Source: Selaginella moellendorffii (Eukaryota > Plantae > Lycopodiophyta). Taken from it: DNA of 61,815 nucleotides. Numbering within the stretch: the stretch's first letter is position 1; every line of letters starts with the position of its first letter. Below, piece by piece: positions 4,979 to 61,815 of the stretch. The stretch lies in the NCBI RefSeq assembly GCF_000143415.4, contig NW_003314360.1:363572-425386 (forward strand), written 5' to 3'. A model generated the notes under the pieces. It was not told the origin of the DNA, did no database searches, and was given only the letters and a program-made list of their open reading frames with translations. A program made the position numbers and the translations under genes.

Positions 4979-5000
4979 TCCCACTTTAACGAAATAGAGC
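4979..5000 (-). repeat. Right terminal inverted repeat of the Sola-like element
   Basis: 21/22 match to the reverse complement of 44706-44727; abuts the point where the MULE reading frame is cut off. Confidence 0.7.
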
Positions 5001-5002
5001 TT

Positions 5003-15617: not shown

Positions 15618-15619
15618 GC

Positions 15620-16645: not shown

Positions 16646-19600
16646 AGGAATAATTAATACCACCTATAGATCCGCCGATGCCTCCTCTTGACGTTCCTCC
16701 AAATCTCAGCCCATCTACGAAAAAACCTTCCATTATTCCGAGAGGAGGGGATGATATGAGGTCCAAGTGTATGGCTACAATACCATATATTAATATTAGC
16801 GTAGTGGGATTTTGGTAGCCATTGAATTAGTTTCAATTCAAACCACTCGCTCTTGTCTATAAACTAGGGTTTTTGGGCTAATTTATATACATATTTTCTT
16901 TATTCCCTTTATTCACACACACACATATGTGTGTGTGTATTAGTGTAGTAGGATTTTGATAGCTATTAGATTTGTTTCAATTTGGACCATTCATTCCTAT
17001 ATATAAGCTAAGGTTTATGGGCCTAATTAATATGTATATTCCTTTATTTCATTTCTATATTCACATTGGTAGAGATGAGGGGCAACTTTGAGGAGTGGTT
17101 GAATTTGTGCTTTTGGTTTAGATTTAGTTTTTATAATATTTAGATTTCTTTTTTTTTATAACTTTTTAATTTTGTTCTATTATGGCTAGAATTTTATCAA
17201 GATCTTGTGGGATTGTGTATACACTGGTTTTAACCACCCTTGATAATGCTTTTCAATTGGCACAATGTTATGAAATATTATTTCTTCCACTTCTTGCTAC
17301 ACATCCTTTAGGTCCACTTCTTGTGAGAGATGGTCATGTTTTGATAGAAGTTGATATTGTTGTTGCTTGTGTTTAAGGACAAGGGCAAGGTCATAGCCTT
17401 GATGTTTATTATTGGGTATGTGATAAAGTTATCCATATGTATAAACATTTTCTGAATTGGCATTCTTTATTTCTTAGGTGGAGGCTTTAGCATCAATAAT
17501 GTCCTATTGGTGTTACTTTAGTGGAAAGTCTTGACATAAAAATTCTTTTAGGAAACAAAGAGTTGCACTAATAATGAAGGGTTCTTGTGTAAATAAGTCA
17601 ATGACCCCTCCATCCTTCTTTCAATTGATATAAATTTAAATTTATCTTTTATCACTCGGCTTGTTAGCATATGTTGCTATCTATAGTTGTATCATGTGGT
17701 AAAGCCAGTCTTTATTCTTTATGGCCATATACATGCATATGCACGGGATGAGGTAGATCTAACTATGAGTGTAGGAGATTTCAAGTTTAAACTTCAATCA
17801 TTATAGATGGTGCTAAGTCAAGCTTTTAACCTCATTTTTTGTATGGATTGGTTATAGTGCAATCATGGTAAATGTGACTTTGAGGCTTCTCCCCCTTGTT
17901 TCATAATTTTTTATATTTATTTCATTCCTCTCACTTTTTTTCCCCTTCGTCCTTTTGCTTCTACCTTTGCTTCCATCACTTTTGTGTTCTCATCACTTTC
18001 TATTGTATTTTCATCTTGCTCCTCTATTCCCTCTCTAGATCCCTCTGACAGTGTTTATGTTGCAAGGGTGGATTGACTCAAGAAGGAGTATGCTAATCTC
18101 TTTGATTTTGACCTGTCGTTTGGGGCTAGAATTGCAACATGCCATCCTATTCTAATTAGAGATGCTCATCTAAAGGTTTCTATTCAACATTGGTCACCAA
18201 AGAAAATCAAAATTTTACATGTGAACATCAATGGGATCTTAGAGAAAGGATTTTATCAAAATGTTTTAAAGTCCTTAGGCATGTAAATTTCATCTTATGA
18301 CGATAAAATATATATATCCATTTCCTAATATCCTATAGAGACTAATACAAACACTGGGTGTGCCACTTTAAAATTGAGCTATCTAGTGAAACTCTCCCTC
18401 ATCTAAAGCAACATTAAATATAAAGTAGAAGCATTTGTGGTTGTGACTATCATACCAAATCCAGATCCACAATCCCCCCCCTCCCCTTTATGCAGACCCT
18501 AGGATCAACTTTGGGTGGTGCCATCTCCATCAAACCTCCTTTTGGTCGCATCGTTGAAACATAGTAGCCATGCTTTTTGCCACTCCTCTAGCCTCTTTAG
18601 CTTCCTTTTGTCTTGAAGGATAGTATGATGTAGCTTTATTGTTGCTAGCACAAGTCTCCACCACTCCACCATCACCACTGATACTCTGACCTAGATCCTA
18701 TCAAAGTGAGCCCGATTGCATGCTTCCCATAAGGCCTAGACCCTCATCATGCACCATACCACCCATCTAGCATGGCCAAGAGCCTTCTATATAAGAACTC
18801 CCATCTTTGCATTGATCACATCCTAATGGACCTAGATCCCTTAACTTGTTAGATCAATTGTGGGAAGTTGGTTTAAAGCTAAAGTAGTTGTTTAGGTTCA
18901 AGGATACGACTTATCTTGAGTACCATATTTTTCGTGAAGGTTTGCAAGTTAATTTTGGCAAATTTTAAAGTTCCTTAATCCAAAGTGTATGAATGATGTG
19001 TAATGCTTTTTAGCTAAGGTGTAATATCTTAGTTATTTTGTTGATTATCTTTTTAATTATATTACACTATTGCGACTATTGTTAAAGTTATCAACATCCT
19101 CTTTTATCTAGTCTATAGACTGTGAGTGAGCATTTATGGATCTCAAAGAGTTATTAACAACTCCTTCAATTTTAGTATATCTTAATTACACTTGACCTTT
19201 AATTTTGCACATGCATGCTTTTAATATCAATTTTAGAGGTATGTTGATGCAAGAGAGTTTGAGTGTGCATGAGTATGTTTGGCTAGTGCCATCCTATTGT
19301 ATATATCAATTGTACATTACAACTAGCAGAGATGAATTATTCCCCAACAGAGAAAGAGTGTTTAACAATATTTTAGGGTTTCGAGAAGCTTTATGCATAT
19401 TTGTATGGTTCTCAAATATTACTAAAAGGCGATCATGTTATAGTTACTTCATTATTAAAGTAGAAGAATTTGGTTGGTTATATTGCTTAATAAACCCTAA
19501 AGCTTCAATGTCACGAATGTGACTTCGGGTATCAAAAGTTACTTGTCAACTAGTCCTTACGGACATTTTTACCTTACTGCCACGGCGGCAAAAGGTTGGT

Positions 19601-20118: not shown

Positions 20119-20669
20119 TGTATAGTAGGGATAGTGGGTAGGTTGGGCATGATTGACCAACCTGAGGTATAGTCTAACTCCCGCTTGTATGTTTGTCCTT
20201 GTTTTGCATCCAGCTTGAGTCTAAGCCCAAGTTCCATTCCATGTTAGCTGGTGGAGTACCCATGTCCTTACATTAGGCCACCAGTATGCCGAAATAGCAC
20301 CAGATTCCATTTGGCTTCGTTTTGCATGCTAGTCCTAGCATTGGGATGTTGGTTGCTCTAGGATTGTACCAAGTCGCTCCGGGCTCCTGTCCTTTCGCTC
20401 CTTGGGCTATATGCTTGGGAGTTGCTCTGTGGTTCGGTTCCGTTGCTCCTACGTTCCATGCTTGGGAGTTTGGCACCATTCCTTCGTTCAGTGACCTAAG
20501 GCCCTGAACCTTGGGTTCCGTACCACTATCATTTAGACACATGGCATATGACACATGGCATGTGTCACATGGCATAAAGAGGGTTTAGGTTCCACTTTGT
20601 GGTGTTATCCTATAGTAAATTACCATAGGATAAAGGGTCAAAACCATGTGCACTACATTTGGTATCAAA
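20119..20669 (+). mobile_element. LTR flanked by a PPT-like G run and a tRNA-Met PBS; same family as 40087-40545 (inverted)
   Basis: Ends ...CACTACA followed by TTTGGTATCAAAG; GAGGGGGGGGG upstream; long reverse-complement similarity to 40087-40545. Left boundary approximate. Confidence 0.55.
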
Positions 20670-21477
20670 GGATGAGTCACATCATCATATATCACATATC
20701 ACATATCATATAACTTGATGGTACATGAAATCATCTCTCCCCCCACCCCCAACCCCTTGGTCCATATACTTTTTATTAAGTGGAACAATCTAATAAATTT
20801 TTGCCACTTATATGACAATCATTACTTATAAAAGACAAAAGGAGTTTATTTAAGTTGGCAAAATCTAAATTAATGAAATGGCATTTTTAATAGGGAGTAC
20901 TAAAGGGAACTTTAAATCTTAATTAAGGAGATTATTATAGAAGTTAAAATACTTATTTCTTTTACATAATTTCTTAAAGAATAACAATTTTATTAAAGAA
21001 AAATAAGTCCCAAAAAGATTTTTCCACAATAGAAACAATTCTAAAGATTATGTTACATACATTTTCTCTATCTATGCAAATTGCATTAACACTTGTCATT
21101 GACAAGAAAATGATTAACAAAGTTAGCCACCCTTACTGCTCTAAGAATCATTTAGGTTACAAAAGATTATATACCCCTACTTATGTATGAGAACTTAAAT
21201 TAACAAACCAAACTTGCTAGTAAGGTTTAAAATAAACTATTATAAATAATCAATTAAAATTTATCATAAATGTGACTATGGATATCTATCTATAAATCCT
21301 TTTAAATATTCTTCTATTATTGCCATAATCACTGTTGGTCCCAACCACATTCAGCCAAGATCCCAACCACTGCCAAACATGGTCAAACAGCTTCGTTCGG
21401 TGATTCCATTCAGTGATTCCAATGACAATTGTGCTTGTGGGGGCTAGAATTCCGATGCTATTGCAGCAATCACGGTC

Positions 21478-36085: not shown

Positions 36086-36773
36086 CAATTGAGTTTTTCT
36101 TTCTCAATTCTTCCCAAGTTTCTTCTCAAGGTCACTTTCCTGAGTCTAGCTTAGGAACGGTCTTGTATTTGAAAAATCAGATGGTGTAAGTATGCACTAT
36201 TAGCAAGTTCAGAAGCTTTTATCGTTGTCTTCACAGGGAAAAAGTGAGCCATCTTCGTCAAACGATCCACAACAACCCAAATAGCATCATTTCCTCGAAA
36301 GGTTTTGGGCAAACCAGTGATAAAGTCCATCGAGATGCTATCCCACTTATTCTCAGGTATACGTAAAGGATGATAGAGGCCAGCGAGCTTCTGATGATCA
36401 ACTTTGACAGCCTGGCAGGTCAAGCAACCACGTACGTACTTCTCAACATCTGACTTCATCCCAGGCCAAAAGAAATGCCTCTTCACCAACATATACGTTC
36501 TCAATACCCCCGGATGCCCAGCACTTGGCACATCATGACACTCAACCAAAATCCGTTTGATGAGTTTGTCAACACGAGGAACCACTACACGTCCCTTCTT
36601 CACCAGGATTCCATCTCATATTTCGAATGACGCAAACTTGTCACCCTTCAAATTTGTAGAGGCGTCCCTCAACAAAACCTTCGCGCGAATATCAGTGATG
36701 AAGGAGTCGAAGTCAGCAAACTCCTTAAGCTCATCCAAGAGATCGCTGGATAGCTTCACGAACGAGATAGAAT

Positions 36774-38861
36774 TTACCATCCTGGATAATGCATCAGCCA
36801 CCTTATTATCACCTCCATGCTTGTACCAGATCTTAACAGACATTTCCTGCAGGAACTCTTGCCAACGAGCAAGACGGCCTCGAAGATCCTTTTGTCGACG
36901 AGAGATTGATGGTCTGAATCCACATGGAAGTCCGATCCATATAGATAATGTCGCCATTCCTTCACAGCAGCAATCACAGCATATAACTCCTTGTCTCGAG
37001 TAGGCCAATTCCGCTGTGTGGCATCAAACTTATGGCTCATGTATGCAAGAGGATGCCCAACTTGAAGCAAAACAGCTCCAATAGCAATGTCACTTGCATC
37101 TGTCTCGACCACAAGAGGCTTTTCAGGATCAAAAATCTTCAACACCGGAGCAGAGATACAACATTGCTTCAAACGTTGAAATGCCACTTCACACTTCTCA
37201 TCCCAACCATGAATAGTAGCATGTTTCGACGTATTCTGAAGAAGATTAGTTAAAGGGGCTGCTATCCCTGAAAAGTCCTTCACAAATCGTCGAAAAACTC
37301 CAGCCATACCAAGGAAACTACGGAGATCATGCACTGTGGAAGGTATAGGCCAATCAACCACGGCCTGAATCTTTGCGGGATCAGCTCTCACTCCATGTAC
37401 CGAAATCAAATGCTCGAGATATCCAATCTCCTCTAAAAAAAACTCACACTTGGATAACTTCGAGTAGAGCTTGTTGTCCCTCAAAAGTTGTAAAACACTT
37501 TGCACATGCATCTCATGTTCCTCCATGGAAGAGCTGAATACCAGGATATCATCAAAATAATCAATTGCAAACTTTCCCAAGTAAGGTTGTAGAACTTGAT
37601 TCATCAATCTCTGAAAAGTTGCAGGAGCATTTGTCAAACCAAACGGCATCACTAAAAACTCGTAGTGACCTGTCCTTGTCCGAAATGCAGTTTTCGGAAC
37701 ATCCTCTGGCTTGACACAAATCTGATGATATCCTTGCCTCAAATCAATCTTCGAAAAATATCGAGCTCCACGAAGATGATCGAGTAAATCATCGATACGA
37801 GGGATCGGGAACATATTCTTCACTATCCTATCATTCAATCCCTTGTAGTTCACACAAAGACGCCATGTACCATCTTTCTTTTTGACCATCACCACTGGAG
37901 CAGCCCAAGGAGATTTGCTGATCCGTAACCACCCTTTCCGAAGGTATTTAGCAAGCTGCCTATTAATCTCCTCATCTTCAGTGGGACTAGTACGAGTTGG
38001 TTGTCGCTGAAAAGGAGCGGCTCTAGGAACCAAGTCAATCTCATGCTGAATTCCACGTTCTGGAGGCAAACCATCAGGTAACTCATCCGGAAATACGTCA
38101 TGGAACTCCTCCTGAATGGAATCCACTTGTGCCTCATGCCCACGAACGTACTCCAAATCAGTCATGATCAAATTAGAAAGAAACGGGTACACCACAAAAG
38201 ATCTAGCTATCTCATGCGAGCATGTTACCAACTCCAAAGCGTTAATCAATGGAGTATCACTATTGTCTGTCCCGACAATCTCTTTTATAGTGCCACCAAC
38301 TTCGATATGCAGAACATTACGCTGCCAATCGATTCTTGGCTTCCTGTCATAAAACCATTCCTTCCCAAGAATAACGTCTGTGCGACCAAGATCCATAACT
38401 TGGAACGAAGGATGGTCGAGAATCCTTTGAACCGTCAAAGGAACACTCAGAGCCCATTCACCGTAAACACGAGTGCTATGTCCATCTGCCATAACCACCT
38501 CGTAGATTACTGAACTCTTTTCCACAGGCAAACCAAGTTTCTTCACCACCTTAGAGCTCAAAAAATTATGTGTAGCACCTGGATCGAAAAGAATACTAAC
38601 AGCATGTCCTTGAATGTCCCCCTTGGCCTTCACAAGTTGATTGCGCATAGAACCATTAATCTCTACAGAGTTGATACGAACTCGAGACTTAGATTCTTGA
38701 ACTTTTGCCACAAGGTGTGGAAGAGCCACCACAGCAGATGCCTGAGCTGTATCCATGATGGATTCCACCACATTCACCTTAGCATTCTTTGATCCCTTCA
38801 CAAGAGGACAATCCTTGCCATGATGTCCAGCCTTATGACAACGAAAACAATTGCCCTCCAC
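36774..38861 (-). CDS. pol: Ty3/gypsy pol (zinc knuckle, protease, RT, RNase H)
   Basis: CFRCHKAGHHGKDC, DPGATH, KIDLRQGYHQI, MPFGLTNAPATFQ, YFDD, TDAS. Confidence 0.9.
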   Translation of the reverse strand: MEGNCFRCHKAGHHGKDCPLVKGSKNAKVNVVESIMDTAQASAVVALPHLVAKVQESKSRVRINSVEINGSMRNQLVKAKGDIQGHAVSILFDPGATHNFLSSKVVKKLGLPVEKSSVIYEVVMADGHSTRVYGEWALSVPLTVQRILDHPSFQVMDLGRTDVILGKEWFYDRKPRIDWQRNVLHIEVGGTIKEIVGTDNSDTPLINALELVTCSHEIARSFVVYPFLSNLIMTDLEYVRGHEAQVDSIQEEFHDVFPDELPDGLPPERGIQHEIDLVPRAAPFQRQPTRTSPTEDEEINRQLAKYLRKGWLRISKSPWAAPVVMVKKKDGTWRLCVNYKGLNDRIVKNMFPIPRIDDLLDHLRGARYFSKIDLRQGYHQICVKPEDVPKTAFRTRTGHYEFLVMPFGLTNAPATFQRLMNQVLQPYLGKFAIDYFDDILVFSSSMEEHEMHVQSVLQLLRDNKLYSKLSKCEFFLEEIGYLEHLISVHGVRADPAKIQAVVDWPIPSTVHDLRSFLGMAGVFRRFVKDFSGIAAPLTNLLQNTSKHATIHGWDEKCEVAFQRLKQCCISAPVLKIFDPEKPLVVETDASDIAIGAVLLQVGHPLAYMSHKFDATQRNWPTRDKELYAVIAAVKEWRHYLYGSDFHVDSDHQSLVDKRIFEAVLLVGKSSCRKCLLRSGTSMEVIIRWLMHYPGW

Positions 38862-38876
38862 CTTGTCCTTCTCTTG

Positions 38877-39824
38877 TTAGTCTAACCGATGTCTTTTTGC
38901 CTCATTGCCATCTCCACTCTTCGAGCTATGACGAAGCAACGGCCGTTTCTTCCCTGAGAATGAAGTATTGGTGGGTTGGTCATCACGTTGACCACCCCGG
39001 AGACCATCCTTTTGACCAACGTTGACCGAGTTGACCGACGGTTTGGGCGAAAAGATTTGAGCCTTAGTGATAGCATCAGTCAATGTTGCTGGAAAATCCT
39101 TCTTGACCTTCTGCTGCACATCCACCGAGCTCAATCCTTTGATAAAACATTGCACCTTTAGCAGCTCATTATAGGTGCCTGTGAGACTAAGGCAAAGATC
39201 ACGGAACTTGCGGGCATACGCATTCAAAGACAAAGTCCCCTGCCGGATCTCTAACAACTGATTCACGAGATCAACCTCTTCAAACTTCTTGACAAACGAA
39301 GCGCGGAAAACCTTTGTCAAATCAGTCCAAGAAGTCGACATTGGATTAGCTTTGATGTAGTTCTTCCACCACGAAGAAGCATGGCCCGTAAGCTTCGTCA
39401 CAAAAAAATCTATCTTCACCTTATCCTCACAAGAATTGTGAGACCAACAACTTTCCCACAATTCCAACCAAGAATCAACCTCTTGACTATCACAAACATC
39501 CAGTGATGATTTCCATTCCACGATACCATAATCCTTGGCATGCTTGACGTACCAATGGTAATCACGGACATGAGATTGATTCAACCCTTGAGGGTTCATG
39601 CGAAGCAAGAAATCCTTGATGAGATTGACGGAATCCTTAACCTCCTTTATGTCGCTCTGAACTGCAGAAATCTGGCGTCCTTGCCGCAGAATGACATCAT
39701 CAAGAGTCTCTTCGGCATCGTCATGGCTATCCTCACTAATGCCATACTCCTCATCAGGATCAATATCTTGCTCACCCGCCATCCCCAAAAGAACGTGCTG
39801 CTCCGATACCAATGAAACGAACAA
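38877..39824 (-). CDS. gag: Ty3/gypsy gag
   Basis: Retrotrans_gag motifs (LTGHASSWW, IRQGTLSLNAYARKF, FIKGL); in frame with pol. Confidence 0.85.
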   Translation of the reverse strand: MFVSLVSEQHVLLGMAGEQDIDPDEEYGISEDSHDDAEETLDDVILRQGRQISAVQSDIKEVKDSVNLIKDFLLRMNPQGLNQSHVRDYHWYVKHAKDYGIVEWKSSLDVCDSQEVDSWLELWESCWSHNSCEDKVKIDFFVTKLTGHASSWWKNYIKANPMSTSWTDLTKVFRASFVKKFEEVDLVNQLLEIRQGTLSLNAYARKFRDLCLSLTGTYNELLKVQCFIKGLSSVDVQQKVKKDFPATLTDAITKAQIFSPKPSVNSVNVGQKDGLRGGQRDDQPTNTSFSGKKRPLLRHSSKSGDGNEAKRHRLD

Positions 39825-46353: not shown

Positions 46354-49095
46354 TTATGAATGCTCTTGCTGCATCTCTTGCATGGTCTGGCAGGTGATGG
46401 TGGCACTCTGCTTCCGCATCCAACCATGCACAACATTATCCACCGATATGCTCATGCTGGGATCCCTTGGATTCAGCACCCATCTCTTTTCTAGGCAATC
46501 CTTCGTATATCCGGAACTTGGCTTGAACCACTCCACAGTTACATTGAAGGAGTTAGTTTCCGCGTCCTCCTCTGCATCAGTGATGCAGCGCCCCACCCAT
46601 ATCATTTGTTTTTTATTACTGGGTCTGACAAGCACGACCATTCCTTTGCAGACCTGTACTGGATTGAATGCTGAATCCGGCTTCTTGTTCCTCGGCCCAC
46701 AATAGTGATCCTCAACATCATTATCTGTCACTGCATTTCCAGAGGACATTGTTCCACTACTATCTGGTGCTCTGGGTTCTGGCCAAAAGGACTCTTCCAA
46801 TTCTTCATATACAACCGGCCCATTTTGGATAGCAGATATAATCTTCTCCCAGTATTCGAGCAAAGGCTTGCACCTCTGAAAATAGGATTCTCCACCAAAC
46901 ACCAACCCCCTCTTCCAGAAGGCAATATGCTGTCTAATCCCGGCCACTATACTTTCCTGGTCTTTGAGTCCATCCGGGTGCATCAGCCGTGGGGAACCCT
47001 GAGGAATTATAGGTTCCCCAGTTATGGGATCTCTCTTGAAGAGTTCAATGCCGTCCACTGGCAGCCACACTGTGTCCCATTCTCTCATCTTGTACCTCAT
47101 CACTGGAGCATCGTCACGCATGCTGAAATGAAACTGAAGAGGCTTGGAGTGGCCAATCAGCGTTTCGGATCCGTCCCTGATGTAGCCTCTTACAAACCCC
47201 TTAAAGTCTGGAACCTCTGTCACAAGTGCAGCTTCAACAATGCCTTTGATGCAATTTTGGAATTCATCGTAGAGTTGTGGGAGGGTGAGGACATTGGATC
47301 GCCGGAGGGACTCTGCCAGGTGACTGAACATGGCATCGACGTCTTCATGAGTGTGCCCAACCATGAGAAAGCCAAGTGTAACCGTTTCAAATATGCCTTT
47401 GGCAACAAGCATCGCCAAGTACGCGAAGACGTACATGTTTTTGTTCTCACTGCCAGCATTGTCTGTTTGGAGCAGAAGATGGGGTGGAAGGCCACATCGG
47501 CCGCAAGAACTTCCTTGAGATTCTGCTTCGTTTGGATGAGGTTGTGCATTCACCGGGCGACCAGCCTCGTCGGAATGGCATGAGGCCTCACGTGATAACC
47601 CTATAATCTGACGGCCAACATATTCACTGGGATGGCATGGGGCCCCACACGATACTGCAAGCCTTTGCTCCTCCTCCAGCTGAACCCTGTATGGGGTTCG
47701 ATCAACAAGGGCCTTATGCAAGGGTTGGCCGTTCAGCTCAGTCTGCGCACTTTGCAGAGACCTTAAGTGTTTTGCTAGGGACGCAATCATCATGTTTGCA
47801 CCCCCGCCACCCCATAGAGGTACAAAGAAGTTCCTATAGTTCTGGGCACCATGCCCATGAGCGATTATGCCAAATAGAGACACAGACAGCTGCATGGATG
47901 AAGAGATTGCCTTGGGGGCAGGATTGAGTCGAGGTAAGCACATCTTTTTCTAGTCCATTTTGTCGTGGATGATGCAGAGGTAAGAGTCAGGTCTCTCCAT
48001 GGAGAGAATCCTGTTATGATAATATGCAGTCCTGCAACTTCTCTGCTCGATGTTGTGGTCGAGCCGCCTTCTAACCAATGTCTCTCGCTCTTGAGCGATG
48101 CAAGAATTCTTCGACAAAGCCATTTTGATAGCAGTGCACTCGTCACACTTTGAAAAGCTGGAGTACTTTCCTATACTCACATCCCTGAACCTGTTGCTCC
48201 ACAATCTACTAAATCTAGATTGGCTCAGCTTCTTGTAGCCATTACTCTGGAGTTCCCGATTCACATCTTCCAATATGGCCCCCTTGGTATACATGGAAGG
48301 GAGAACTCGTTGGGTGTCTCGAGTTCCATCTTCTAAGAGGCGGGTTTTATGTGGTTGCTGTTCGCTACATGTCTCGACAAACCTCTTGAAGATTGCCTCT
48401 CCATATACAACATGACCCCTGGTTTTGTGAGTACTGTCGTTCCCATGGACTGCCTATTGAACCCTTTGTTCCTCGAACTCAGTTTTGATTCTGTAGAATG
48501 TGGTTCGAGGGACTCCATAAATGATTCTCCATGCCTTCATGCAGACCAAACCCCTCTGGAAGACCATGCCCCCCACCTGATGTTCTGAAGCATCAACAGA
48601 TGACCGTAATGCCTTATACACAAAATTGCGAGCTGCCTTCCAGGACAATGTCTTGTATCTTGCTCTCTCCTCTTCAATAGCATCCCAATCAGCATGTTGA
48701 CAGCACCTCCTCTTGCAACAAGCAACTGTCGAGACCATTCAAACCTCCATCGCCATTTTCTGCCTTTTCGGTTCGTTGCTCAGATCCCTTTGGCTGCGCT
48801 TTAGGAAGGTGTACTTTCTTTTCCCATGAAGAGATGTTCTGTCATCAGTTGTAGTGGTGTTTGATTGTGAATCCTTCACATTCTCAAACACTAAGTGCCT
48901 CAATTTCCACCGCACAATGCTTCCAATAGTCAGACTGTTTTCTTCTGTGTCAACAACCTCTAAAATCGCAACTCCAATATCATCCCAGCCCAATTCTTGA
49001 TTAGCAACCGCATCTCTTGGATCGACAACTGTGGCTAAGCCCTCAGCTACCACCTCCCCCTTGGGGTTGTTTAGAAACACCTTTGCCTGATCCAT
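46354..49095 (-). pseudogene. Sola1/DUF7869-like DDD transposase (about 910 codons, three nonsense codons)
   Basis: One frame with stops at 48739 (TGA), 48454 (TAG) and 47950 (TAG). Motifs CCKRRC, VCMKAW..YGV, FSKCDEC, IIHDKMD(Q), LQTDNAGSENKN and FLMVGHTHEDVDAMFS; C-terminal SH3/Tudor-like beta domain. Confidence 0.75.
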
Positions 49096-50520: not shown

Positions 50521-52151
50521 CACAGCTCACAACGCCGCTTACACAAGCAGCGCTCATTGCGCTCAGCGGAACCAAGAACACGGCGCACAAAAATGATAGA
50601 CCTAGGAATGAGTTCAAGAATTCAAAAATAACACACGCTTGAACGTCACATCAAATCCTCTGACAAACCAGATCTTATGATTCCTCTGACAAATTTCAAA
50701 CTGAGTAGCTTCTAGACTTTGCTGTCGGAGGTTGAACTTTGTCACATCATGTCCTTGCCTCGATCCAGCTGTGCCATGTCAGTGATTCGAACTTTGCCAT
50801 GCCATGTCAGCGATCCGCGCCAAGATTATTCGCCGTGTAAAGGAATAATTATGCTGTGTGTGTACGTCCATTTATGGCAATATAAGGCCACACGCCATTC
50901 AAAGAATAATGCTAGTCGAGCATTTTTTGGTGCATTTTTGGGTTCAAACTTGCATGAGCCCACACGCTATAAAGTTTACCTGTACCAAAAATAGAAACAG
51001 CTTTATTTACTTGGGAATTTAAGTGGTTGAGGCATTTTTAAACTTACAAACACATGCCCTACTTACGTTCCTTTGGTTGCTTAAAATTCAAAAATATTAT
51101 AAACCTTTCTTTTTGCATTTTCAATGTTTTCAATTATGGTTTTTGATTTTCGCAAGACCAGCCTAGTAATTAGCAATTCAGTAGCTTGATAAACATGCAA
51201 ATACAGAACTTGATGCAAAATCCTTTGATATGTTAGGACCATAAACACATTTCAATAGAGAGGGTCCTTTCATTTCATAACTCCTTACGTAGATCTTGGT
51301 GAAACCAGAGTTAGTGAAGTTGGTTTCAACATTGCTAAACATTGTAAGGCTCGTGTAGTCTCATGTGGTGTCCGATCGAGATGCTTCTTTGCAGGGTCAT
51401 TAAGAAGGACATTGTATACCATTCTTTATTTAGCTGAACATCTGGCATTTTTGGAAATACAAGATGCTTTGGAATATCCAATCATAAATGGTATAAATAT
51501 AGCGAGGGTATTAAATGATATCCCAATCCTGATCTTTCTTTTGGATTTCGCGTGCATGCAGTCCGAGGAATGATGACATTGCGGATTTCTTTTGGATTTC
51601 ACGTGCATGCATGCACGCGGCGATCCAGAAATTAATGGTGGCGCCCAAGTCCGACGAATGATGACGTTGCGGGATTACCAAACGTCGTGACATTTCACGC
51701 GTGTGAGGTTAGGTTTTGCATTTTGCTTCGTACTCGTGCTTGCACACTCGCGCTTGCATCGCGCTCCCACTCGCGATCACGCTCACATTCGCGCTCATCT
51801 ACCTTCTCTACAGGTTTCTCGTGTGCATCGGCGTCCACTTGAGCTTGCATCACACTCGCGCTCGCATCGCGCTCGTGTGCATTGGCGTCCACTTCAAGAC
51901 ACACCCAGTTTGTAACTTCGCCGCCAACTCCGCCGCCCACTCCGCCACCCACACACAGCCCACTTGGCATCCCGGGAGATTTCAGCGCCACTCTCCAACT
52001 GTAAGTGGCAGAGTAGCCTTGCTGCTACGATCCGCTGCACACACAATGCACATTCGCCAGCGAGTCCGGCCTCGATTGTCACGCCTCCATTTGGCTTCAA
52101 ATGGTAAGTCTTTTAGGCCAAGTAGAAAATGGCATGAGGCCACATGCCATT

Positions 52152-52183
52152 CAGCCAAGGGAACGGACTTGGAAGAATCAGCC

Positions 52184-52219
<36 letters not shown>

Positions 52220-52224
52220 ACTTT
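52152..52224 (+). rRNA. 28S (25S/26S) rRNA fragment, 5' half (orphon, non-functional)
   Basis: CAGCCAAGGGAACGGACTTGGAAGAATCAGCCGGGAAAGAAGACCCTGTTGAGCTTGACTCTAGTCCGACTTT matches the conserved eukaryotic LSU core with few substitutions. Confidence 0.92.
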
Positions 52225-53881
52225 GTCAATGGGGGCTTTTCATATTTATCCTCTTGAAAAACCATAGAGGTCTAGTTTCGACATGCTCGAAACTGGCAAA
52301 GAGCATATGGGGGGGTTGAGAAGAGGGGAGGATCCCTAGAACTAGAGTGCGGTTCGGTTCTGTGCAGATCAGATCAAGGAACTAGTGTCCGGTTCTGTGC
52401 TGCCCAAAGCCATGCCACTCACTCCGCAAACGCGTGCTCCCTATCCGTACTGGTGGTGAACTTCGCGCCTTATCCATGGTCCTCAGCCTCATCTCTCCCA
52501 TGTGGTTGCATCTACAGATGTGAAGGACTTGAGTCAATCGTGAGATCAGTGAAGGTACACCGCCCTTGCTTGATCTCCATCTGTATGACGCCTACAGTTT
52601 TCCAGAGATATAAGAAGCCCCTGGAGATGTACTGTCCTGGATCCCACAGTGCGGTGAACTGAGGAGGAGTGTGCCGTCTCCGGTAATGGTGATGCTGCTG
52701 CTGCCTGGGAGTCCTCTCCTCGCTGCTGTGTGACTGATCCCCTCCAACTGGGATTGCTGTTTCCAGCCTCCCATCAGGCCGTGCAAGTGTAGTGCCGCCA
52801 CGCCAGTCCCACGGCCTCATACCAGTGTAGCCGTACCCTTGGCACTATCCATCTGGAATCACAACCAAAGGCGAGCCGCTCCTTTCGGATCCGGGTTGAA
52901 GCTACGTTTCCGTACTCCAACAAGCTAGCCTGATGCAGCTTCTGACACGAGCCGTGCCCCTCGAAACATCCCATACATCAAATGGCGTTGCTCCGAGTGC
53001 CTTGATCATGGTGGATCCACAACCAAGGCAAGAAAGGGATCAGCCAACACAGCTGTACCGTACAAATTGGGACTTCAGTGTGCCGTCGAAAGTTGTTCCT
53101 TTGCCGATTGGGACTAGGTGTACAATCGGAGGGTAGGGAAGTGCTGCCACGTAGTTTGAAGGACCCGGTGCGTGTCGGAGAATAGTGTCCTTTGCATATT
53201 CAAACGAGCAGCCGTAACGGCGCCAAGCGAGTTGTCCCCTCCTTAGGTGGAGCTTGGCTCTCCGGACCCCAAAACTCCGAACCCCAAGTGAATGAGGAAG
53301 GAAGGACGCTGCCGATGAGGTTCTGTGCAGCTAGTGTCCTTGGAAGAAGTTCCAGCAACCGTGGACTCCAAAGCCCCCAACTTGAACCATGTTCCGAAAT
53401 TTGAACGTTTGGATCTTGCTCGTGAACCGTTGGATTGCCACGAAGTTTTGCTGGCGTGTGCTCCTTCGGAGGATCTATCTTCCCACCGTTGCGATCAGTG
53501 AAAAGGTACGTGGTTCAGCCGCCGCCGCAATCCCCAGGTCGTCCATAACCCTAGCCGCCACCAGAGATAGGGTCGCCTTGATCTCCTGATTCCTGGCTCC
53601 AAATCGCCTGTTCTTGGACTCAGAATGATCGTGGGGATGTGCTCTCTCCAGCCGTGAAAAAGAATCGTGGGAAATCCATGTGGAGAGCTCGCAGTGACTA
53701 AAAGAGTACTCTTGACGCTTTCTCGCTCATGGAACATGCAAATCCAGTGAAACCAAGGCACGGCTTGCTCTCAGCATCGTCCTTATTGCTCTCCTAGTCC
53801 TACTCCTACTCTGGATCAAGCACGAAAGTCGACTCTCAAGGCACTCCTCTTCTCGCTAAACTTAGGGTTTTTTTTCTCTCT
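52225..53881 (-). mobile_element. Unit A: non-autonomous retroelement family 1 (apparently full length, about 1.66 kb)
   Basis: Bounded by CTAGTCCGACTTT; its 3' end resembles the LINE 3' end incl. the GTTTCG-ACATGCT-CGAAAC stem-loop; no RT ORF; telo-box at the 5' end. Confidence 0.75.
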
Positions 53882-53910
53882 CTAGTCCGACTTTTCACTA
53901 GTCCGACTTT

Positions 53911-55994
53911 TTTTGTTAAACGGGGCTTTTATTCACCAGAAAACCAAAACTGGGCTGAGTTTCGTTAAGGCACGAAACCAGCAAAGAGCCGCGACAGAAA
54001 GTTTCGTCGTGCACGAAACCAACAAAGAGCAATAGGGGGGGTCTTCACGTGGAGGTACTTTGTAGAAAAACTCGCCGCAGACTTTTATCTCAAGCCATGG
54101 TCTTGAGTAGAGCCAGCAGAAAGATGATGGGAGAAGCTCCAAGTACCAAGGAACCAGCCTTTACGACTTGAGAGTAGAGTTACTGAAGAACTTGTCTCTC
54201 TTGATCCCTTAAGGAGAGACTCCAGGTGCCAAGGGGTCAGTGCTGAGAGGGGAGTTGCTCACAAGCTTGACGGCTCATGCTGTCGCGATTGTGGAATCCA
54301 GAACCCTGTCCAGTGGCGTCCACAATCACTCGTGAGTACTTGCCTCTCTTGATCCCCTCAGAGGGCATGCCTTACATCGTCTTTGTGCCTCGTCGAGTCT
54401 CTGAACTGAAGTGTATCTGACCATAAGTATTTCTTGAAACCTTGGAGGTACCCCATGGACGTACACTGCTCTCCCTTGGTTTCTTCTTGTGCACTTTCAT
54501 ATCTGCCCCCCGCTGTAAGCTGCTGATGATCGGACCCTACTGAGACTCAGTACCAATCTTGTCGCTCGTCGGTGTCGAGTGCTCTTGTTGGTGCCTTTGC
54601 TCTGGTCCATGTCTTTATCTTGAGTGTCTTCATAGCTAGGGCCAAAGAACTCATTCATTGTGACCACACTAAACACCCTCAATTGTCGTAGAGAAGCTGG
54701 ATGTTTGCCCAAGTGTTGGTGACGAAATCCTCCTCACGTGGGGAGCCTTGTTTCCAAACCTCCACCATTGTCGACCTTGAAGAAACCCACAAAGAGAACC
54801 ACCTCCTTGATAAGTCATCAAGATCGACAAACTTGAAGCAAGGTCGCGTACGACACCATCACTTCAAGCTCCCAATCCTTGGCAAGAATCACCTTACAAG
54901 TCTTGGGGATGAAGAGGATCTCCTTCACCTTGCTTGAGCTCACCACTGTCCATGGAGCAGGCCTCCAGACCCCCAGAAAGAAAACCGTGGAGTAACGAAG
55001 GACAAGTCTAAGCAGCAAGCCGAGGACTCAAATACTTAGATCTCCTTCCTCCACCGTTTGATCTTCCTGAAAATCTGAAGGCCGACTCTCCATATTCAGC
55101 TCCAACTTCTCACCGACGTGATCTCGAAACGAGTGCATTAGCCAGGAGAACCAGCCGCTCGAACTTACACTGGACTTCACTTGTTTGAACCATGAAACTT
55201 GAGCTGACAGATCTTGCAGCCCAGCCGTTAGATCTTCGTGAAACTTTGTAGGCGCAATCTCCCTAGCGTCTTCTAGCTTCTCACCAGAGCGATTTTTGGT
55301 CCGATGTCGCCTAAAGCAGCCACAGCTGACCCATTCTCGCCTCAAACCTTAGCCGCCCAAGTGCCTAGGGTCACTTGTATCTTCCCAGATCTTTATCCAA
55401 ACGGCCTGCATCTAGTGACAGAGTGTCTTTGCCTTGTAGAACCCCAGCCGTGGAGAAGAAAAGAGAAGCCCAGCCGGTGATGAGTGCCAGACGCTCAAAC
55501 TTCCACTGGCCCACACTTGCTTGAACCGTGAACTTCGAGCAGACGGATCTCGCAACCCAGCCGTTAGATCTTCTTGAAATCTTGTAGTTGCAGTCTCCCT
55601 GGTGTCTTCTAGCTTCTCACCAGAGCGATCTCAGATCAGATGGCGCATATAGCAGTCGCAGCCGACCCTTGCTCACCCCGAACCCTAGCCGCCGACATGA
55701 CTAGGGCCACTTCGATCTTCTCGGATTTCAATCCAAACGGCCTGCAGATAGCGACAGAGTGTTGCCTTGCATTGTAGGAGCCCAGCCGTGGATAGAACAG
55801 AGAAGACCAGCCAGTGATGAGAGCAAAACAAAAGATTTTTCGATGAAGTGCCCAATATTGCTTGTGCCTTCGATTCTTGAGGGGGCGCCTTGATTCAGCA
55901 GCTCACAGGACTTCTACACTACCTCCTCTACACTAGATCTGGCCACGGAAGTCGACTCTCAATGCGCCATCTCCTCCTCTCCGTCTAGGGTTTT
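53911..55994 (-). mobile_element. Unit B: non-autonomous retroelement family 2 (about 2.08 kb)
   Basis: Bounded by the same TSD; two GTTTCG-N7/8-CGAAAC..CAAAGAGC stem-loops at the 3' end; 5' motif AAGTCGACTCTCAA...TAGGGTTTT shared with unit A. Confidence 0.7.
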
Positions 55995-56030
55995 CTAGTC
56001 CGACTTTTCTAGTCCCACTAGTCCGACTTT

Positions 56031-56518
56031 TTGTCAATGGGGTTTTATTTAGTTTAGCCTCTATAAACCATAGAGTCCGATTTCGACATGCTCGAAACCG
56101 GGAAAGAGCTCTTCAAGATTTTTAGGGGGGGTGGGACGAGGGGGACGAAGTAGAACTGGTACTCGAGCCCGTGATGTCTGAGCTCCAAGCTTTCGAAGTT
56201 CCTGATGTGGAACTCTGTCGACTCGGGGAGGTACACGTGCTTTCGTTCCTGAACATGTGCTGCCAAATCCATATTGGTGGCTTCCACGTCCATTCTTCTT
56301 CTCCAGCCTCGCTTCTTCCTCTAAAAAACAGCCACAGCTTCTTCTCCTTCGCTATCTTCCCTTCCTCGCCTCGTTTGATCAGCGTGTCCAGGCGGGCCGC
56401 GAGTGAGACGATCAGTCTGGACCAAACCTTTGAGATAGTTGCTCGAGCCGAGGGGTCCGTGTCCTCGAACAGCCTGGCGCAGCGAGCCTTCCATATCTCT
56501 GCTAGTGTGCATCCCCGA
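56031..56518 (-). mobile_element. Unit C: 5'-truncated LINE 3' end (488 bp)
   Basis: Near-identical to 57543-58029; bounded by the TSD. Confidence 0.9.
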
Positions 56519-56531
56519 CTAGTCCGACTTT

Positions 56532-57529
56532 TTGTCAATGGGGGCTTTTCATATTTATCCTCTTGAAAAACCATAGAGGTCCAGTTTCGACATGCTCGAA
56601 ACTGGCAAAGAGCATATGGGGGGGTTGAGAAGAGGGGAGGATCCCTAGAACTAGAGTGCAGTTCGGTTCTGTGCAGATCAGATCAAGGAACTAGTGTCCG
56701 GTTCTGTGCTGCCCAAAGCCATGCCACTCACTCCGCAAACGCGTGCTCCCTATCCGTACTGGTGGTGAACTTCGCGCCTTATCCATGGTCCCCAGCCTCA
56801 TCTCTCCCATGTGGTTGCATCTACAAATGTGAAGGACTTGAGTCGATCGTGAGATCAGTGAAGGTACACCGCCCTTGCTTGATCTCCATCTGTATGACGC
56901 CTACAGTTTTCCAGAGATATAAGAAGCCCCTGGAGATGTACTGTCCTAGATCCCACAGTGCGGTGAACTGAGGAGGAGTGTGCCGTCTCCGGTAATGGTG
57001 ATGCTGCTGCTGCCTGGGAGTCCTCTCCTCACTGCTGTGTGACTGATCCCCTCCAACTGGGATTGCTGTTTCCAGCCTCCCATCAGGCCGTGCAAGTGTA
57101 GTGCCGCCACGCCAGTCCCACGGCCTCATACCAGTGTAGCCGTACCCTTGGTGCTATCCATCTGGAATCACAACCAAAGGCGAGCCGCTCCTTTCGGATC
57201 CGGGTTGAAGCTACGTTTCCGTACTCCAACAAGCTAGCCTGATGCAGCTTCTGACACGAGCCGTGCCCCTCGAAACATCCCATACATCAAATGGCGTTGC
57301 TCCGAGTGCCTTGATCATGGTGGATCCACAACCAAGGCAAGAAAGGGATCAGCCAACACAGCTGTACCGTACAAATTGGGACTTCAGTGTGCCGTCGAAA
57401 GTTGTTCCTTTGCCGATTGGGACTAGGTGTACAATCGGAGGGTAGGGAAGTGCTGCCACGTAGTTTGAAGGACCCGGTGCGTGTCGGAGAATAGTGTCCT
57501 TTGCATATTCAAACGAGCAGCCGTAACGA
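56532..57529 (-). mobile_element. Unit D: 5'-truncated copy of family 1 (about 1 kb)
   Basis: Near-identical to 52225-53219; bounded by the TSD. Confidence 0.9.
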
Positions 57530-57542
57530 CTAGTCCGACTTT

Positions 57543-59956
57543 TTGTCAATGGGGTTTTATTTAGTTTAGCCTCTATAAACCATAGAGTCCGATTTCGACA
57601 TGCTCGAAACCGGGAAAGAGCTCTTCAAGATTTTTAGGGGGGGTGGGACGAGGGGGACGAAGTAGAACTGGTACTCGAGCCCGTGATGTCTGAGCTCCAA
57701 GCTTTCGAAGTTCCTGATGTGGAACTCTGTCGACTCGGGGAGGTACACGTGCTTTCGTTCCTGAACATGTGCTGCCAAATCCATATTGGTGGCTTCCACG
57801 TCCATTCTTCTTCTCCAGCCTCGCTTCTTCCTCTAAAAAACGGCCACAGCTTCTTCTCCTTCGCTATCTTCCCTTCCTCGCCTCGTTTGATCAGCGTGTC
57901 CAGGCGGGCCGCGAGTGAGACGATCAGTCTGGACCAAACCTTTGAGATAGTTGCTCGAGCCGAGGGGTCCGTGTCCTCGAACAGCCTGGCGCAGCGAGCC
58001 TTCCATATCTCTGCTAGTGTGCATCCCCGAAGCGCATCAAAGAGCTCCTGGTGGAGGTGCGTAATGTGTGTCCGAGTTTGGTTGAGTTGATCAAAGTGTG
58101 GGGCCTCATTGTGTCTCCACTTCCATGCATCAGGATTCTTTGTTTTTCCTTGGATGAAGCTACCCCAGAGTGCTGATTCGTATGTGATTGCAGCTCCTCC
58201 GGTTGACGTTTGTTTGAGCACCGCTGCTGCACCTTCCCATACTTCCTGTGCTGCCGGACATTCCCATAAGATGTGTCGCTGTGTTTCTGTGGCGCCACAG
58301 GTCTTGCAGGCTGTGTTCGGAAGATGTATGGCAACCAGGGAGGGAAGACGTTCTTGTTGGGCCAGCCACATGAAGTAGCGGTTCTTAGCTGACCAGCGCC
58401 CTTTCCAGATCTTGTTGATGCAGTGTGAGTGGTTCCTGGAACGGATCTGTTGGGCCTTTGCTTTCCGGATGAGGGAGGATCGAGTTGGCACCCTGATCAG
58501 CTTGCGGCCCAGCTTGGTCTCGTACTGGAAGAAGTCCTTGCACGTGGTTCCCCTCCAATGCCACTCTGCAGGATCCCACTTGAGTTCGTCCAGGGTTTGT
58601 TGGCGGAACCAGTAGAGGCGGGCATATTGGTTTTTTGGGATCAGTGGATCAACGTTGGCAGTTTTTTTCTCCATTTGAATCACTCTGATCGGTTTGGCCC
58701 TGCTCATGTCGGGGAGGTCCTCGTACTCGGGGGTAACGATGGGGTACAAGCGTCCAGCCTGTCCTGCCTTGAAGACTAGTCCCGATGCCATGTTGGGGAG
58801 GGTGCATACGATCGATTCGTCCAGCTTCCACCAACGATGGTGTTGATCCTCTTGCAGGTTTAGTCGTTCAAGGCATGCGTGTTTGGCTGCTAAAAAGGCT
58901 GTCTGGAATTTACGCATCCTGTGTTCTGAGATGGTTAATCCGTAGAAAGTACTGATGCGGTCGCGATTGTGGGCCGTCTGGTTGGGCTGGATCATGGTGT
59001 CTGCCTCTGCGAAGGTTCTCATCCCTGCTCGGTGCAGGTCTCTACATGTCTGGTCCAGGCCGCGATCCTCTGAAGCTCCGAGCGTTTTACCGTTGACCGC
59101 GAAGAGTTTGCTTAGGAAAATTGGCTGCCGGTCCAGTTGTTCTTTGGTACGAGGTGGTTTACGTTCCAGCTTGCACTTGAATTGCCTCCAGAGCTTGAAC
59201 AGCTTTCCTGAGAACGTGTGAGCCTTTGTCATTTTGAGTTTGGTGTCTGAGAAGAGCCATTGTTCGTCTGGCGCCCAGTTTTGTCTGGTGTGCTCGTTCC
59301 TGTCCGGGAGGACTTTCAAAAATTGTGCTCGCAGCAGTATTCTCCATGGTTGGTGGCCAGGCATGAGCATCCTTGTGAAAATTTTGAAGAGAAGAGCCTT
59401 GCATTGTTCTTCGATGTCAATAATATTGAGGCCACCTTCGTGCTTTGGAAGTGTTACTGACCGCCAGTTGACCTTTGCTCCACCACGCGACACGCAGGAG
59501 GAGCCTTTCCAGACATAGGTTCGAATGAGTTGGTTCATTTCCTGGATCGTTCGCCTGTCCATGTTCCAGCATGCTGCCAGGAACCAGATCGCTCCAAGTA
59601 GGATGCTGTTAGCCACCACGCAGCGTGCTGAGAACGATAGTTTTCTGCTCGCCCAGAACTTGAGTTGATCCCTTAGTTTTGTTACTGCTTTTTGGTTCTG
59701 GGGTTCTGGATCATACTGGCGTCCCACTTGGAATCCAAGGTAGCGGGTGGTCTCTTCCGTGTCCAGCCATTTGAAGCCCAGCTCCGTGCCCCATGTTGGA
59801 GGTCTGCCGGGGGGGAGCCATAGTCCTACCGATTTGTGCCAGTTTGTTTTCGATCCCATGGCCTCATTGAAAAAGTCCAGGTCCCTTTTGACGCTTGAGA
59901 GGTTCTCCGGTGATCCCTCCACGATCAGGCTTGTGTCGTCTGCAAAGGCTGAGGAA
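57543..59956 (-). mobile_element. Unit E: 5'-truncated L1/Tx1-type LINE, ORF2 C-terminal part (RT from FADD, zf-RVT)
   Basis: AFADDT, NWHKS, RYLGF, LSFSARCVVANS, KVNWRSVTLPKHEGGLNI, CKTCGATETQRHILWEC and IWKARC..LF; frame open to 57634. Confidence 0.92.
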
Positions 59957-60029
59957 CTAGTCCGACTTTTTGAAATGACTTGAGAGGTGTAGAATAAGTG
60001 GGAGCTTCGGCGCAAGTGAAATACCACTA
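59957..60029 (+). rRNA. 28S rRNA fragment, 3' half
   Basis: CTAGTCCGACTTTTTGAAATGACTTGAGAGGTGTAGAATAAGTGGGAGCTTCGGCGCAAGTGAAATACCACTA directly continues the 52152-52224 LSU sequence. Confidence 0.92.
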
Positions 60030-61815
60030 ATGGTAAGTCTTTTAGGCCAAGTAGAAAATGGCATGAGGCCACATGCCATTCAGTAGCAACATTGGCATGC
60101 ACCGATTGGGCTCTCGAGTGCAGTCCAGTTACAGATGGCGTGTCTGTCACTTGGATCCAGCAACTGTCAATGTGGATGCAGAGAAGGGGGAGGAGCTCAC
60201 CAGTTGGACTATCGGGATGGAAGGCGAGGATCTGAGGCTGTACAACACAGATGGTGGGAGAAAAGAATGCATGGGGATCCTCATCCAAGTGACAGACACT
60301 CCATGCAGTTCCATGCAAGAATATGGACTGGCACTTGTGGTAGAGACAGCGTTCGCCTTCAAGATCCACCTTGCACATCCTAGCGGCTTCCCGGAGGGGG
60401 GCAGCGGCTATGAGGAATTCCTAGAGGGAGCTAGGGAGAGGTTGTCTAGGAAGCCCACAATTTCAAAGACGCTGCGGGTCTATGAAGATCACATGGAATC
60501 CACGGACCTCACCTACGGCGATGTTCAAAAACTATATTCCAACATTGAGCCGTTGAGAGTGCCTCCAGTTCGCGAAACGAAGGGGAAGGGGGTCGATCTG
60601 GAAACTACCCCGAAGCAGAAAAGGGTGGTCAAGCTCAAGCCGACGTCCGACTCTCCTACTCCAAAAAAGAAGCTACTCGGTGATGCCATTGCCTCGGGTT
60701 CGAACATTACACCCACCAAAAAGAAGAGCCGCAAAGAGCAGAAAGAGCAAGAAGAGGCAGCAAAAATCGTCGCAGATAATAGTACTTGTTACTATTCCAA
60801 CAAAGTATATACAATCGACGTGAGCCGTATCGACATCTAAAGCAAATACAACCACAGGCTAGTATCTGATGAGTGGGTGGAGAAATTGAAGCAGAAGATG
60901 CTGGCAAGTCCAGTAACACCCAACATCGCAGACGTGATCCCCTACTACCGAACAATGAAGGGCGAGACGAGGTTTCCAGACTTGATCAATAGGAAGGTGT
61001 TGGACGATCAGAAAATCCGGTTCTATGCCGTCTCCGGGCAACATTCTAGCTTGGCGATGCAAGAGATAGTTGTGGATATTATGGTGGGCGAGGAGGTGAA
61101 GAAAGTCTTCAAGACAAGAGTTGTCCGCCTGATAAAAGGCAACTCGCCCCTCCGATCTATCATATACATCTCCCACGCGCAGAATGTCAAGCAAGAAACA
61201 TGCTACAAATCGGGTCTGCACGAGACATTGGCACGAACACGGAAGCTCTGGGTTCAACTGAAGAAGCCACAAAAACTAGGACAAGGACGTGCACTAGCAA
61301 CTAGCGCCTGGCAGGTAAGCCTCGTTGCATGTGGCATAGCATGTGGCCTCACGCCATTTCCATTGCAGGAATTCTCGAGTCTTCTCTCGAAAACACTGGG
61401 GGTCAATGACACACTCAGCATCCATAACATTCTACTCGCGACAAAAGTTGTTTTTGACAAATGGGTAGATGTGTTAAGGAGGTACCATGACGGGGAGTTG
61501 TTAAACTCAATGGGTGTGGAGGACGGCTGGAAGCCCAATGATTTGAAGCTCAACACCTTGCGTTTCTCGCGGTCTCTAGACGACGACGGCCTTCTGACAG
61601 TGGCTAATGCTCTTCTACGTGGTGAGGTAGTCTTCAACAAGACCAAAATGACTCCCGGCCATATTGTGACATACGAGGACTTGTGCATGACTCTGAGAGC
61701 TCGTGCGCTATTGAAGGATTGGATCTTCGAGCAAGTGGGCGTGGAGAGGGTGAGCATCGACACCACGCAAGAGATGATGGAAGAGCTTGGATTTGTCAAA
61801 CTGAAGACATCGACG

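Follow-up and report, generated by a model that had tools for sequence, protein, structure and literature searches.

The subject of this report is an array of retroelements in a 61,815-nt stretch of the genome of the lycophyte Selaginella moellendorffii (NCBI RefSeq assembly GCF_000143415.4, contig NW_003314360.1, positions 363,572 to 425,386 of the forward strand; hereafter the window). The array combines copies of a long interspersed nuclear element (LINE) with two families of non-autonomous elements, A (units A and D) and B (unit B), inserted at one position of the 28S, or large-subunit (LSU), ribosomal RNA (rRNA) sequence. The reading we favor, and consider likely, is that the LINE proteins copy A and B in trans at this 28S site, by way of a 3' tail that A and B share with the LINEs. 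The arrangement of a LINE and its parasites is a familiar one, and it is met here in an unusual form: in a plant, apparently specific to ribosomal DNA (rDNA), and antisense to it.

The closest proteins to the 773-aa reading frame of the window LINE are gene models of S. moellendorffii itself, up to 86% identical, and six further loci (L001 to L006) were obtained by fetching the contigs of LINE-related gene models. It was only after a full-length LINE had been fetched from one of these loci that the bodies of A and B could be compared with a complete element.

Array of Retroelements at One 28S Position

Five retroelements stand head-to-tail, all on the minus strand, between two plus-strand pieces of 28S rRNA (window 52155-60029). 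The left piece (52155-52224) matches the Rfam model LSU_rRNA_eukarya at positions 2366-2446 (68 bits, E 1e-16) and is 93% identical to the antisense LSU flank in L002; the right piece (59957-60029) matches positions 2428-2508 of the same model (42.8 bits, E 1e-9). They overlap at model positions 2428-2440, and this overlap is a 13-bp duplication, the target word CTAGTCCGACTTT, found at the end of the left piece (52212-52224) and at the start of the right one (59957-59969). Eight copies of the word are present in the window, where 0.04 would be expected, and every unit of the array is bounded by it. There is a single point of interruption in the 28S, after the TTT of CTAGTCCGACTTT, at about position 2440 of the Rfam LSU model. 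The interrupted piece amounts to ~135 nt in total and does not lie within an rDNA unit. When the whole window was searched against Rfam at the gathering level no rRNA was reported; the 28S pieces are too short, and they appear only when searched alone.

In plus-strand order, the units are the full-length A (52225-53881, 1657 bp), the full-length B (53915-55994, 2080 bp), unit C (56033-56518), unit D (56534-57529, 996 bp), and a truncated LINE-1 (57545-59956). Unit C is a 5'-truncated LINE-1 comprising its last 486 bp, 99.8% identical to window 57529-58030, and it lies inside the span (52225-57529) that a preliminary description of this DNA had assigned to the non-autonomous families. Unit D is a 5'-truncated A, 98.9% identical to the full-length copy, and its target duplications occupy 56519-56533 and 57530-57544. 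In both C and D the truncated 5' end stops exactly at the target duplication, which is the signature of a 5'-truncated, target-primed insertion and not of a segmental duplication. Five separate insertion events made this array, antisense to the rRNA.

The junctions are just as regular. At 20 of them the element ends in GAC (LINE-1 and A) or AAC (B and LINE-2, a second lineage presented below) and passes directly into AAAGTCGGACTAG; some junctions of the window have one to four extra A, and altogether 3-7 A are present, three of them derived from the target. The sequence left after insertion is GACTTT-GTCAA or GACTTT-GTTAA, and the window's own downstream junction is GACTTT-TTGAA; we take the canonical plant 28S sequence at the site to be GACTTT-GTGAA. 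Arrays of three to six elements are found in the window, L001, L002, and L003.

Do the other loci have the same orientation? In L002, L004, and L005, the LINE 3' end runs directly into several hundred bases of opposite-strand LSU rRNA, and in the window the elements occupy the minus strand and the rRNA the plus strand. It follows that the two LINE lineages use a single 28S position and enter it antisense to the rRNA, and the orientation that would permit co-transcription, on the same strand as the rRNA, was seen in none of these four places. They are flanked by LSU sequence, whereas in L001 and L003 only the 28S target word is present between the elements.

Some smaller observations concern the surroundings of the arrays. 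Two or three copies of the target duplication stand only 1-11 nt apart, with no element between them, at L003:9196-9240, at L001:12485-12521, and at two places in the window: 53882-53914, where two copies are separated by "ca" and the second is followed by four extra T, and 55995-56032, where a partial duplication lies between two full ones. These runs may be abortive insertions or recombination scars. The rDNA by the L002 array (15350-16200 and 20656-20774) is a rearranged relic in which ~750 nt of antisense LSU is joined directly to small-subunit (SSU) sequence, and a 5S gene is found 4 kb from this LSU/SSU relic.

In the window, the 28S piece and its array sit between two perfect 55-bp direct repeats (52100-52154 and 60029-60083, plus strand, 100% identical), each with an ATG and a stretch resembling an intron; their host is a repeated gene or element. 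Two copies of this host, ~96% identical (window 1-2700 versus 51880-52154 plus 60029-61815), specify a ~690-aa protein that has no Pfam match, and it is the second copy that bears the 28S. In the paralogous copy (window 108-280), the repeat is present once and 28S sequence is lacking. About 135 nt may be enough for targeting, unless the array arrived there as a block.

Two LINE Lineages

The LINE-1 copy of the window is truncated at the FADD motif of its reverse transcriptase (RT) and is 96% identical to the full-length LINE at L003:9241-17628. What remains is the C-terminus of ORF2, open over 773 aa (57634-59955, minus strand), which carries the plant-L1-type zinc-binding domain zf-RVT (PF13966, E 5e-9), and a 3' untranslated region (UTR) of 89 nt (57545-57633, minus strand) with a hairpin inside 57593-57621. 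The full-length element is ~8.4 kb long and has a leader of ~760 nt, two long ORF1 frames, and an ORF2 with APE, RVT_1, and zf-RVT domains. The same order, an N-terminal APE endonuclease and then the RT, is seen in a further full-length copy, L001:3662-6955 (Exo_endo_phos, E 2e-16; RVT_1, E 5e-27). The solved structure nearest to ORF2 is that of L1 ORF2p (E 2e-38), with R2 far behind (E 1e-15). Judged from its predicted domains and from this comparison of solved structures against R2, the LINE is of the L1 type. It departs from the relaxed L1 type, characterized by a long poly(A) and an AT-rich, loosely defined target: its A-runs are short, and its target is one 13-bp word.

The second lineage, LINE-2, is found at L004, L005, and L001:12522 onward, and no copy of it is present in the window. 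Its ORF2 is ~60% identical to that of LINE-1 at the DNA level and 51-53% identical in protein. Two LINE lineages target one 28S site. The preliminary description had envisaged a single LINE specific for 28S; the 28S flanks were confirmed with Rfam, but the number of lineages had to be doubled, and the specificity has an exception. At L006:22899-25495, an older LINE-1 copy with C-to-T decay stands in tandem with a truncated A inside a Ty3-like element, and the two share a different and decayed duplication of ~16-20 bp that has an A-run at its start and CTAG at its end. Targeting of the 28S is not absolute.

As for the neighborhood of LINE-2, the region of its L004 copy is bracketed by a 551-bp inverted repeat pair (4657-5207 and 17447-17997), one arm of which interrupts the 5' part of the LINE; this may be another transposon. 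An RT retrieved from ENA (L007, 34% identical) was dropped, its 3' end being unrelated.

The Non-Autonomous Families A and B

Unit A (minus strand) is 97% identical to an independent copy at L003:7546-9195, which lies between two LINE-1 copies. Its 3' module occupies 52225-52307, with the hairpin inside 52276-52304, and its 5' end carries AAACCCTAAG. Unit B (minus strand) is 93.5% identical to L002:13291-15352. It ends in a distal tail of the LINE-2 type (53915-53992), preceded by a proximal tail module with an older hairpin (53993-54046), and its 5' end carries AAAACCCTAG. A further copy of A, truncated and 87% identical, is at L006:22899-23499. The junction of body and tail is the same in four copies of A, on three contigs, and in two copies of B. 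With the exception of the truncated A at L006, the copies of A and B at other loci have the same target duplications as those of the window. Target duplications, 5' truncation, and the existence of independent copies together identify A/D and B as genuine non-autonomous retroposon families.

The preliminary description was right in regarding them as families and mistaken in treating them as unconnected. The first ~500 nt of A and B align at 58% identity, and a 335-bp module (M) is present once in A (53360-53688) and in 2.3 tandem copies in B (55026-55826). A profile of this module matches only A and B across all of the fetched DNA.

Neither A, D, nor B has an ORF longer than 105 aa or an RT, and the L003 copy of A has an interruption in the element's longest ORF. 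Could their bodies be decayed LINE sequence? When A and B were compared with the complete LINE-1 and LINE-2 by blastn (word size 7), by tblastn, and by an nhmmer profile of the M module, no nucleotide, translated, or profile similarity came to light except in the terminal ~100 nt of the 3' end and in a short word at the 5' end. In agreement with this, tblastn with the long ORFs upstream of APE/RT from both LINE lineages and with the LINE-1 ORF2 gave nothing below E 0.3 that would indicate a decayed ORF1 or ORF2. The bodies had been described as devoid of RT and unrelated to the LINE, and so they proved to be.

Nor are A and B short interspersed nuclear elements (SINEs), for which they had already been thought too long and without a tRNA or 5S head. 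ARAGORN finds no tRNA gene in them, Rfam gives no match below E = 0.1 and only one chance microRNA match at E up to 1, and their lengths of 1657 and 2080 bp compare with less than about 700 bp for SINEs. They lack a tRNA, 5S, 7SL, or snRNA head. This match, probably due to chance, is to the MIR533 precursor, inside B (window 54960-55083, minus strand); with 24.6 bits (E 0.1) it is weak and falls well short of the gathering score.

At the 5' side, the word AAACCCTA(A/G) is found within the first 25 nt of LINE-1, A, and B, and it is absent from LINE-2. It resembles what we take to be the plant telo-box, and it is a weak candidate for a promoter word.

A Common 3' Tail with a Conserved Hairpin

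The feature that links these different bodies is their 3' end. A motif at the end of the LINE and of units A/D and B had been noted at the outset, together with its duplication in B, and both statements hold. On the plus strand the pattern TTTCG-N6-9-CGAAAC-N2-4-SAAAGAGC occurs six times in the window, starting at 52276, 53960, 54002, 56081, 56585, and 57593, and never in shuffled sequences; the second and third of these positions are the two occurrences in B. The stop codon of the LINE ORF2 falls within a C-run, so that the region common to the LINE and A is the whole 89-nt 3' UTR and a few codons.

Alignment of 17 tails gives, in order, an invariant GCTCTTT, the hairpin, a U-rich stretch, an A-rich signal-like stretch, and a CCCC terminus. 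None of the 17 tails departs from the GCTCTTT, the A-run, or CC, and an AAUAAA-like word is found 11-20 nt upstream of the element end. The hairpin has a 10-bp stem and a loop of 5-8 nt. It is the centroid structure of single-sequence folds, and RNAalifold recovers the same helix unprompted.

The proposal had been staked in advance on covariation of the stem across copies, and compensatory changes are indeed present. Over the 17 tails, 92.4% of the stem cells are paired, and five of the ten pairs have changes on both sides. The covariation score is 0.363, compared with 0.224 after shuffling (none of 500 shuffles reaches 0.363) and with at most 0.11 when the stem is slid by one to three columns. 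The pair that closes the loop is A-U in the LINE-1/A group and U-A in the LINE-2/B group; lower in the stem, G-C is replaced by A-U and C-G by U-A among young LINE-1, old LINE-1, A, and LINE-2. The loops vary freely in sequence and length. The first picture, of a conserved stem with a different loop in each element, was correct for the stem, which is maintained with compensation and has 10 bp instead of the 5-6 supposed; as to the loops, those of A and LINE-1 are identical (GCAUG), and only the two B hairpins and LINE-2 differ.

A covariance model built on the tail locates it only at these elements in 206 kb; the truncated units are among them, with 88.9 bits for the 3' module of C (56033-56112) and 97.4 bits for that of D. 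Searching metagenomes with the tail pattern gave 36 matches, none of which was confirmed by the covariance model, and they were set aside as chance.

Which LINE does each family follow? Over about 80 nt, the A tail is 76-77% identical to LINE-1 tails and 60% identical to LINE-2, while the B tail is 73% identical to LINE-2 and 53% to LINE-1, the cross-matches overall being 53-62%. By this measure, the tail of A is that of LINE-1, and the tail of B is that of LINE-2. In B, the upstream hairpin has the C-run, the 4-nt spacer, and the GCTCTTT of A and of the old LINE-1 copy, and the downstream hairpin and terminus are LINE-2-like. The simplest reading of the alignment suggests a single non-coding lineage with an old LINE-1 tail, from which B arose by gaining the LINE-2 tail, with the old hairpin left behind.

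Proposed Mechanism and Alternatives

In the mechanism that we propose, the APE endonuclease of the LINE would nick the rRNA-sense strand after GACTTT, and the exposed T-run would prime reverse transcription at the very end of the RNA and its short A-tail. The terminus of the template RNA would be ...CCCC-AUUGAC for LINE-1 and A, or ...CCCC-GUUUAAC for LINE-2 and B, and a second nick 13 bp away would yield the duplication. The ORF2 protein would choose its template by the ~90-nt 3' UTR, in which GCUCUUU, the 10-bp hairpin, the U-rich stretch, the AAUAAA-like signal, and the CCCC terminus are found. As A and B bear this module without any LINE coding sequence, they would be copied in trans, A by means of a LINE-1-type tail and B by means of a LINE-2-type tail, with the vestigial older hairpin upstream of the latter suggesting a tail swap. 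The target site would be re-created by the 13-bp duplication in combination with the GT-AA at the element end, a mimic of the native GTGAA; new copies could then stack in tandem, which would explain the arrays of three to six elements. Their antisense orientation denies the elements a ride on Pol I transcripts, and a promoter of their own would be required.

Several points weigh against this reading. The hijacking is deduced from anatomy, and trans-mobilization, the two nick positions, and the promoter are predictions. Only about four lineages (young LINE-1, old LINE-1, A, and LINE-2/B) contribute the compensatory changes, two of which are at CpG sites in decayed copies, and the UUUCG/CGAAA core of the stem is invariant and so uninformative either way. 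A second hairpin, after the main one, is marginal (z about -2) in LINE-1 and A and not significant in LINE-2 and B. The 5' motif is only 8-9 nt long, was chosen post hoc, and does not occur in LINE-2. One copy of A and one of the LINE are at the non-28S site in L006. Finally, the additional loci were reached via LINE proteins, so that the sample of A and B is biased toward LINE arrays in 28S.

The alternative that survives best, which we still regard as unlikely, accepts that the common tail matters and denies that the hairpin is recognized: the RT or the polyadenylation machinery would read single-stranded words (GCUCUUU, the AAUAAA-like word, CCCC-AUUGAC), and the stem would be kept for another purpose, for example RNA stability. 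The invariance of GCTCTTT, the A-run, and CC throughout the alignment speaks for such a model, the constant stem core could likewise reflect conservation at the level of sequence, and folds of whole tails are only mildly better than those of shuffles (z -0.7 to -2.4). However, five stem pairs stay paired through two-sided changes while the loops vary freely, and the stringent LINEs that have been studied experimentally read a 3' stem-loop (PMC4176376, PMC3472496).

A second possibility is that A and B arose from the LINE by internal deletion, as the SIDEs did from R2, and are not foreign bodies that acquired a LINE tail. This has a known rDNA-specific precedent in the SIDEs themselves (PMC3414825), and A and B do share both ends with the LINE, the 3' UTR and the short 5' word AAACCCTA(A/G). 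Yet blastn, tblastn, and nhmmer find nothing else in full-length LINE-1 or LINE-2, the match being confined to the first ~10 nt and the final ~100 nt, and we judge this origin quite improbable.

The last alternative, that A and B are one-off chimeric retrocopies (an RT template switch from the LINE tail to a cellular RNA) or the product of segmental duplication and not replicating families, could appeal to the chimeras that L1-type RTs are known to make and to the near-identical pairs of the array (A/D, 98.9%; C/LINE, 99.8%), but it is already largely refuted, and hardly credible, given the recurrence of the body-tail junction, the truncated ends of D and C exactly at the target duplication, the divergence of the A tail to 76% identity with LINE-1, so that it has a history of its own, and the different neighbors at each locus.

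Relation to Known Systems

Copying of A and B by the LINE machinery would place the Selaginella elements beside the stringent LINEs, for which the sharing of a tail with SINEs and a compensated 3' hairpin are established; cases of the L1 clade are known in maize and Chlamydomonas, namely, LINE1-1_ZM with ZmSINE2/3 and L1-1_CR (Ohshima 2012, PMC3472496), and in fish LINEs ORF2 has been shown to recognize the stem-loop (PMC4176376). Like the stringent L1 LINEs of plants and algae, the present elements have an L1-clade ORF2, a conserved 3' end of ~50-100 nt with a compensated hairpin, non-autonomous partners with the same tail, and no long poly(A). Unlike those LINE/SINE pairs, the partners are 1.7-2.1 kb long, have no Pol III head, and possess a conserved 5' region of their own; the LINEs are, in the loci covered, largely specific for a 28S site, two LINE/partner pairs share one target, and the host is a lycophyte.

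Animals have rDNA-specific LINEs with non-autonomous derivatives, as R1, R2, and the SIDEs demonstrate (Eickbush & Eickbush 2012, PMC3414825), and R1 also has an APE-type endonuclease (R1Bm EN, PMC1919474). The Selaginella LINEs resemble R1 and R2 in their precise insertion at one conserved 28S position, in the exact 3' junction without a long A-tail, and in frequent 5' truncation. R1 makes a duplication of ~14 bp. R1 and R2 are inserted in the sense orientation and co-transcribed with the rRNA, whereas the Selaginella elements are antisense, which makes Pol I co-transcription impossible; in addition, their target is regenerated, giving tandem arrays, and their ORF2 is nearest to L1 and not to R2. 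Presumably, the site also differs in its 28S position from those of R1 and R2.

The SIDEs, non-autonomous derivatives of R2 and of R2/R1, are likewise parasites at the LINE's own 28S site that keep its functional ends (PMC3414825). They are internal deletions of a LINE, and in this respect A and B, with bodies that have no LINE similarity and are not a subset of a parent, are different. Another comparison can be made with SVA of hominids and HeT-A of Drosophila, kilobase-sized retroposons that depend on LINEs, have no Pol III head, and are presumably Pol II transcripts. A and B are similarly kilobase-sized, non-autonomous, and without a Pol III head, and they too are presumably Pol II transcripts that LINE proteins copy. 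SVA depends on poly(A) and on a relaxed L1; A and B, unlike SVA, carry a specific structured LINE tail and have a specific target.

Taken together, the differences from what is known are the plant host, the L1-type ORF2, the antisense orientation, the regenerated target and its arrays, the kilobase-sized partners not derived from the LINE, and the presence of two pairs at one site. In the searchable literature, which does not include Repbase itself, we found no description of these elements or of Repbase names for Selaginella LINEs, and a 2024 review table of transposons in rDNA contains no plant LINE in the large-subunit gene (PMC10946416). This may be the first LINE system of a land plant dedicated to one site in the large-subunit rRNA gene, antisense and self-promoted, re-creating its target, with an ectopic target of ~135 nt and long non-coding parasites that co-diversify with it and have moved between LINE tails, a claim that we put forward only tentatively.

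Why should such elements attract interest? Two related LINEs with one target, distinguishable tails, and their own non-coding passengers are a natural orthogonal RNA-recognition pair for studying how a stringent RT chooses its template. The ectopic target of ~135 nt gives an idea of how short a stretch of DNA could be sufficient for the endonuclease. An rDNA-writing enzyme native to plants would also be of interest to the groups adapting animal R2, which is now being developed for insertion into plant genomes (bioRxiv 10.1101/2025.08.22.671877).

Other Features of the Window

Away from the array, the minus strand of the window has a Ty3/gypsy retrotransposon with gag, protease, RT, and RNase H (36151-39824) and an ORF with DUF7869 (46354-47943). 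A palindromic word, ATGGCRTG-GGCC-CAYGCCAT, recurs in GT...AG intron-like stretches of ~55 nt in the repeated host gene, at window 235-262, 320-345, 373-400, 1640-1675, 50870-50900, 52128-52150, 60057-60080, and 61330-61355, and looks like a mobile or templated intron motif.

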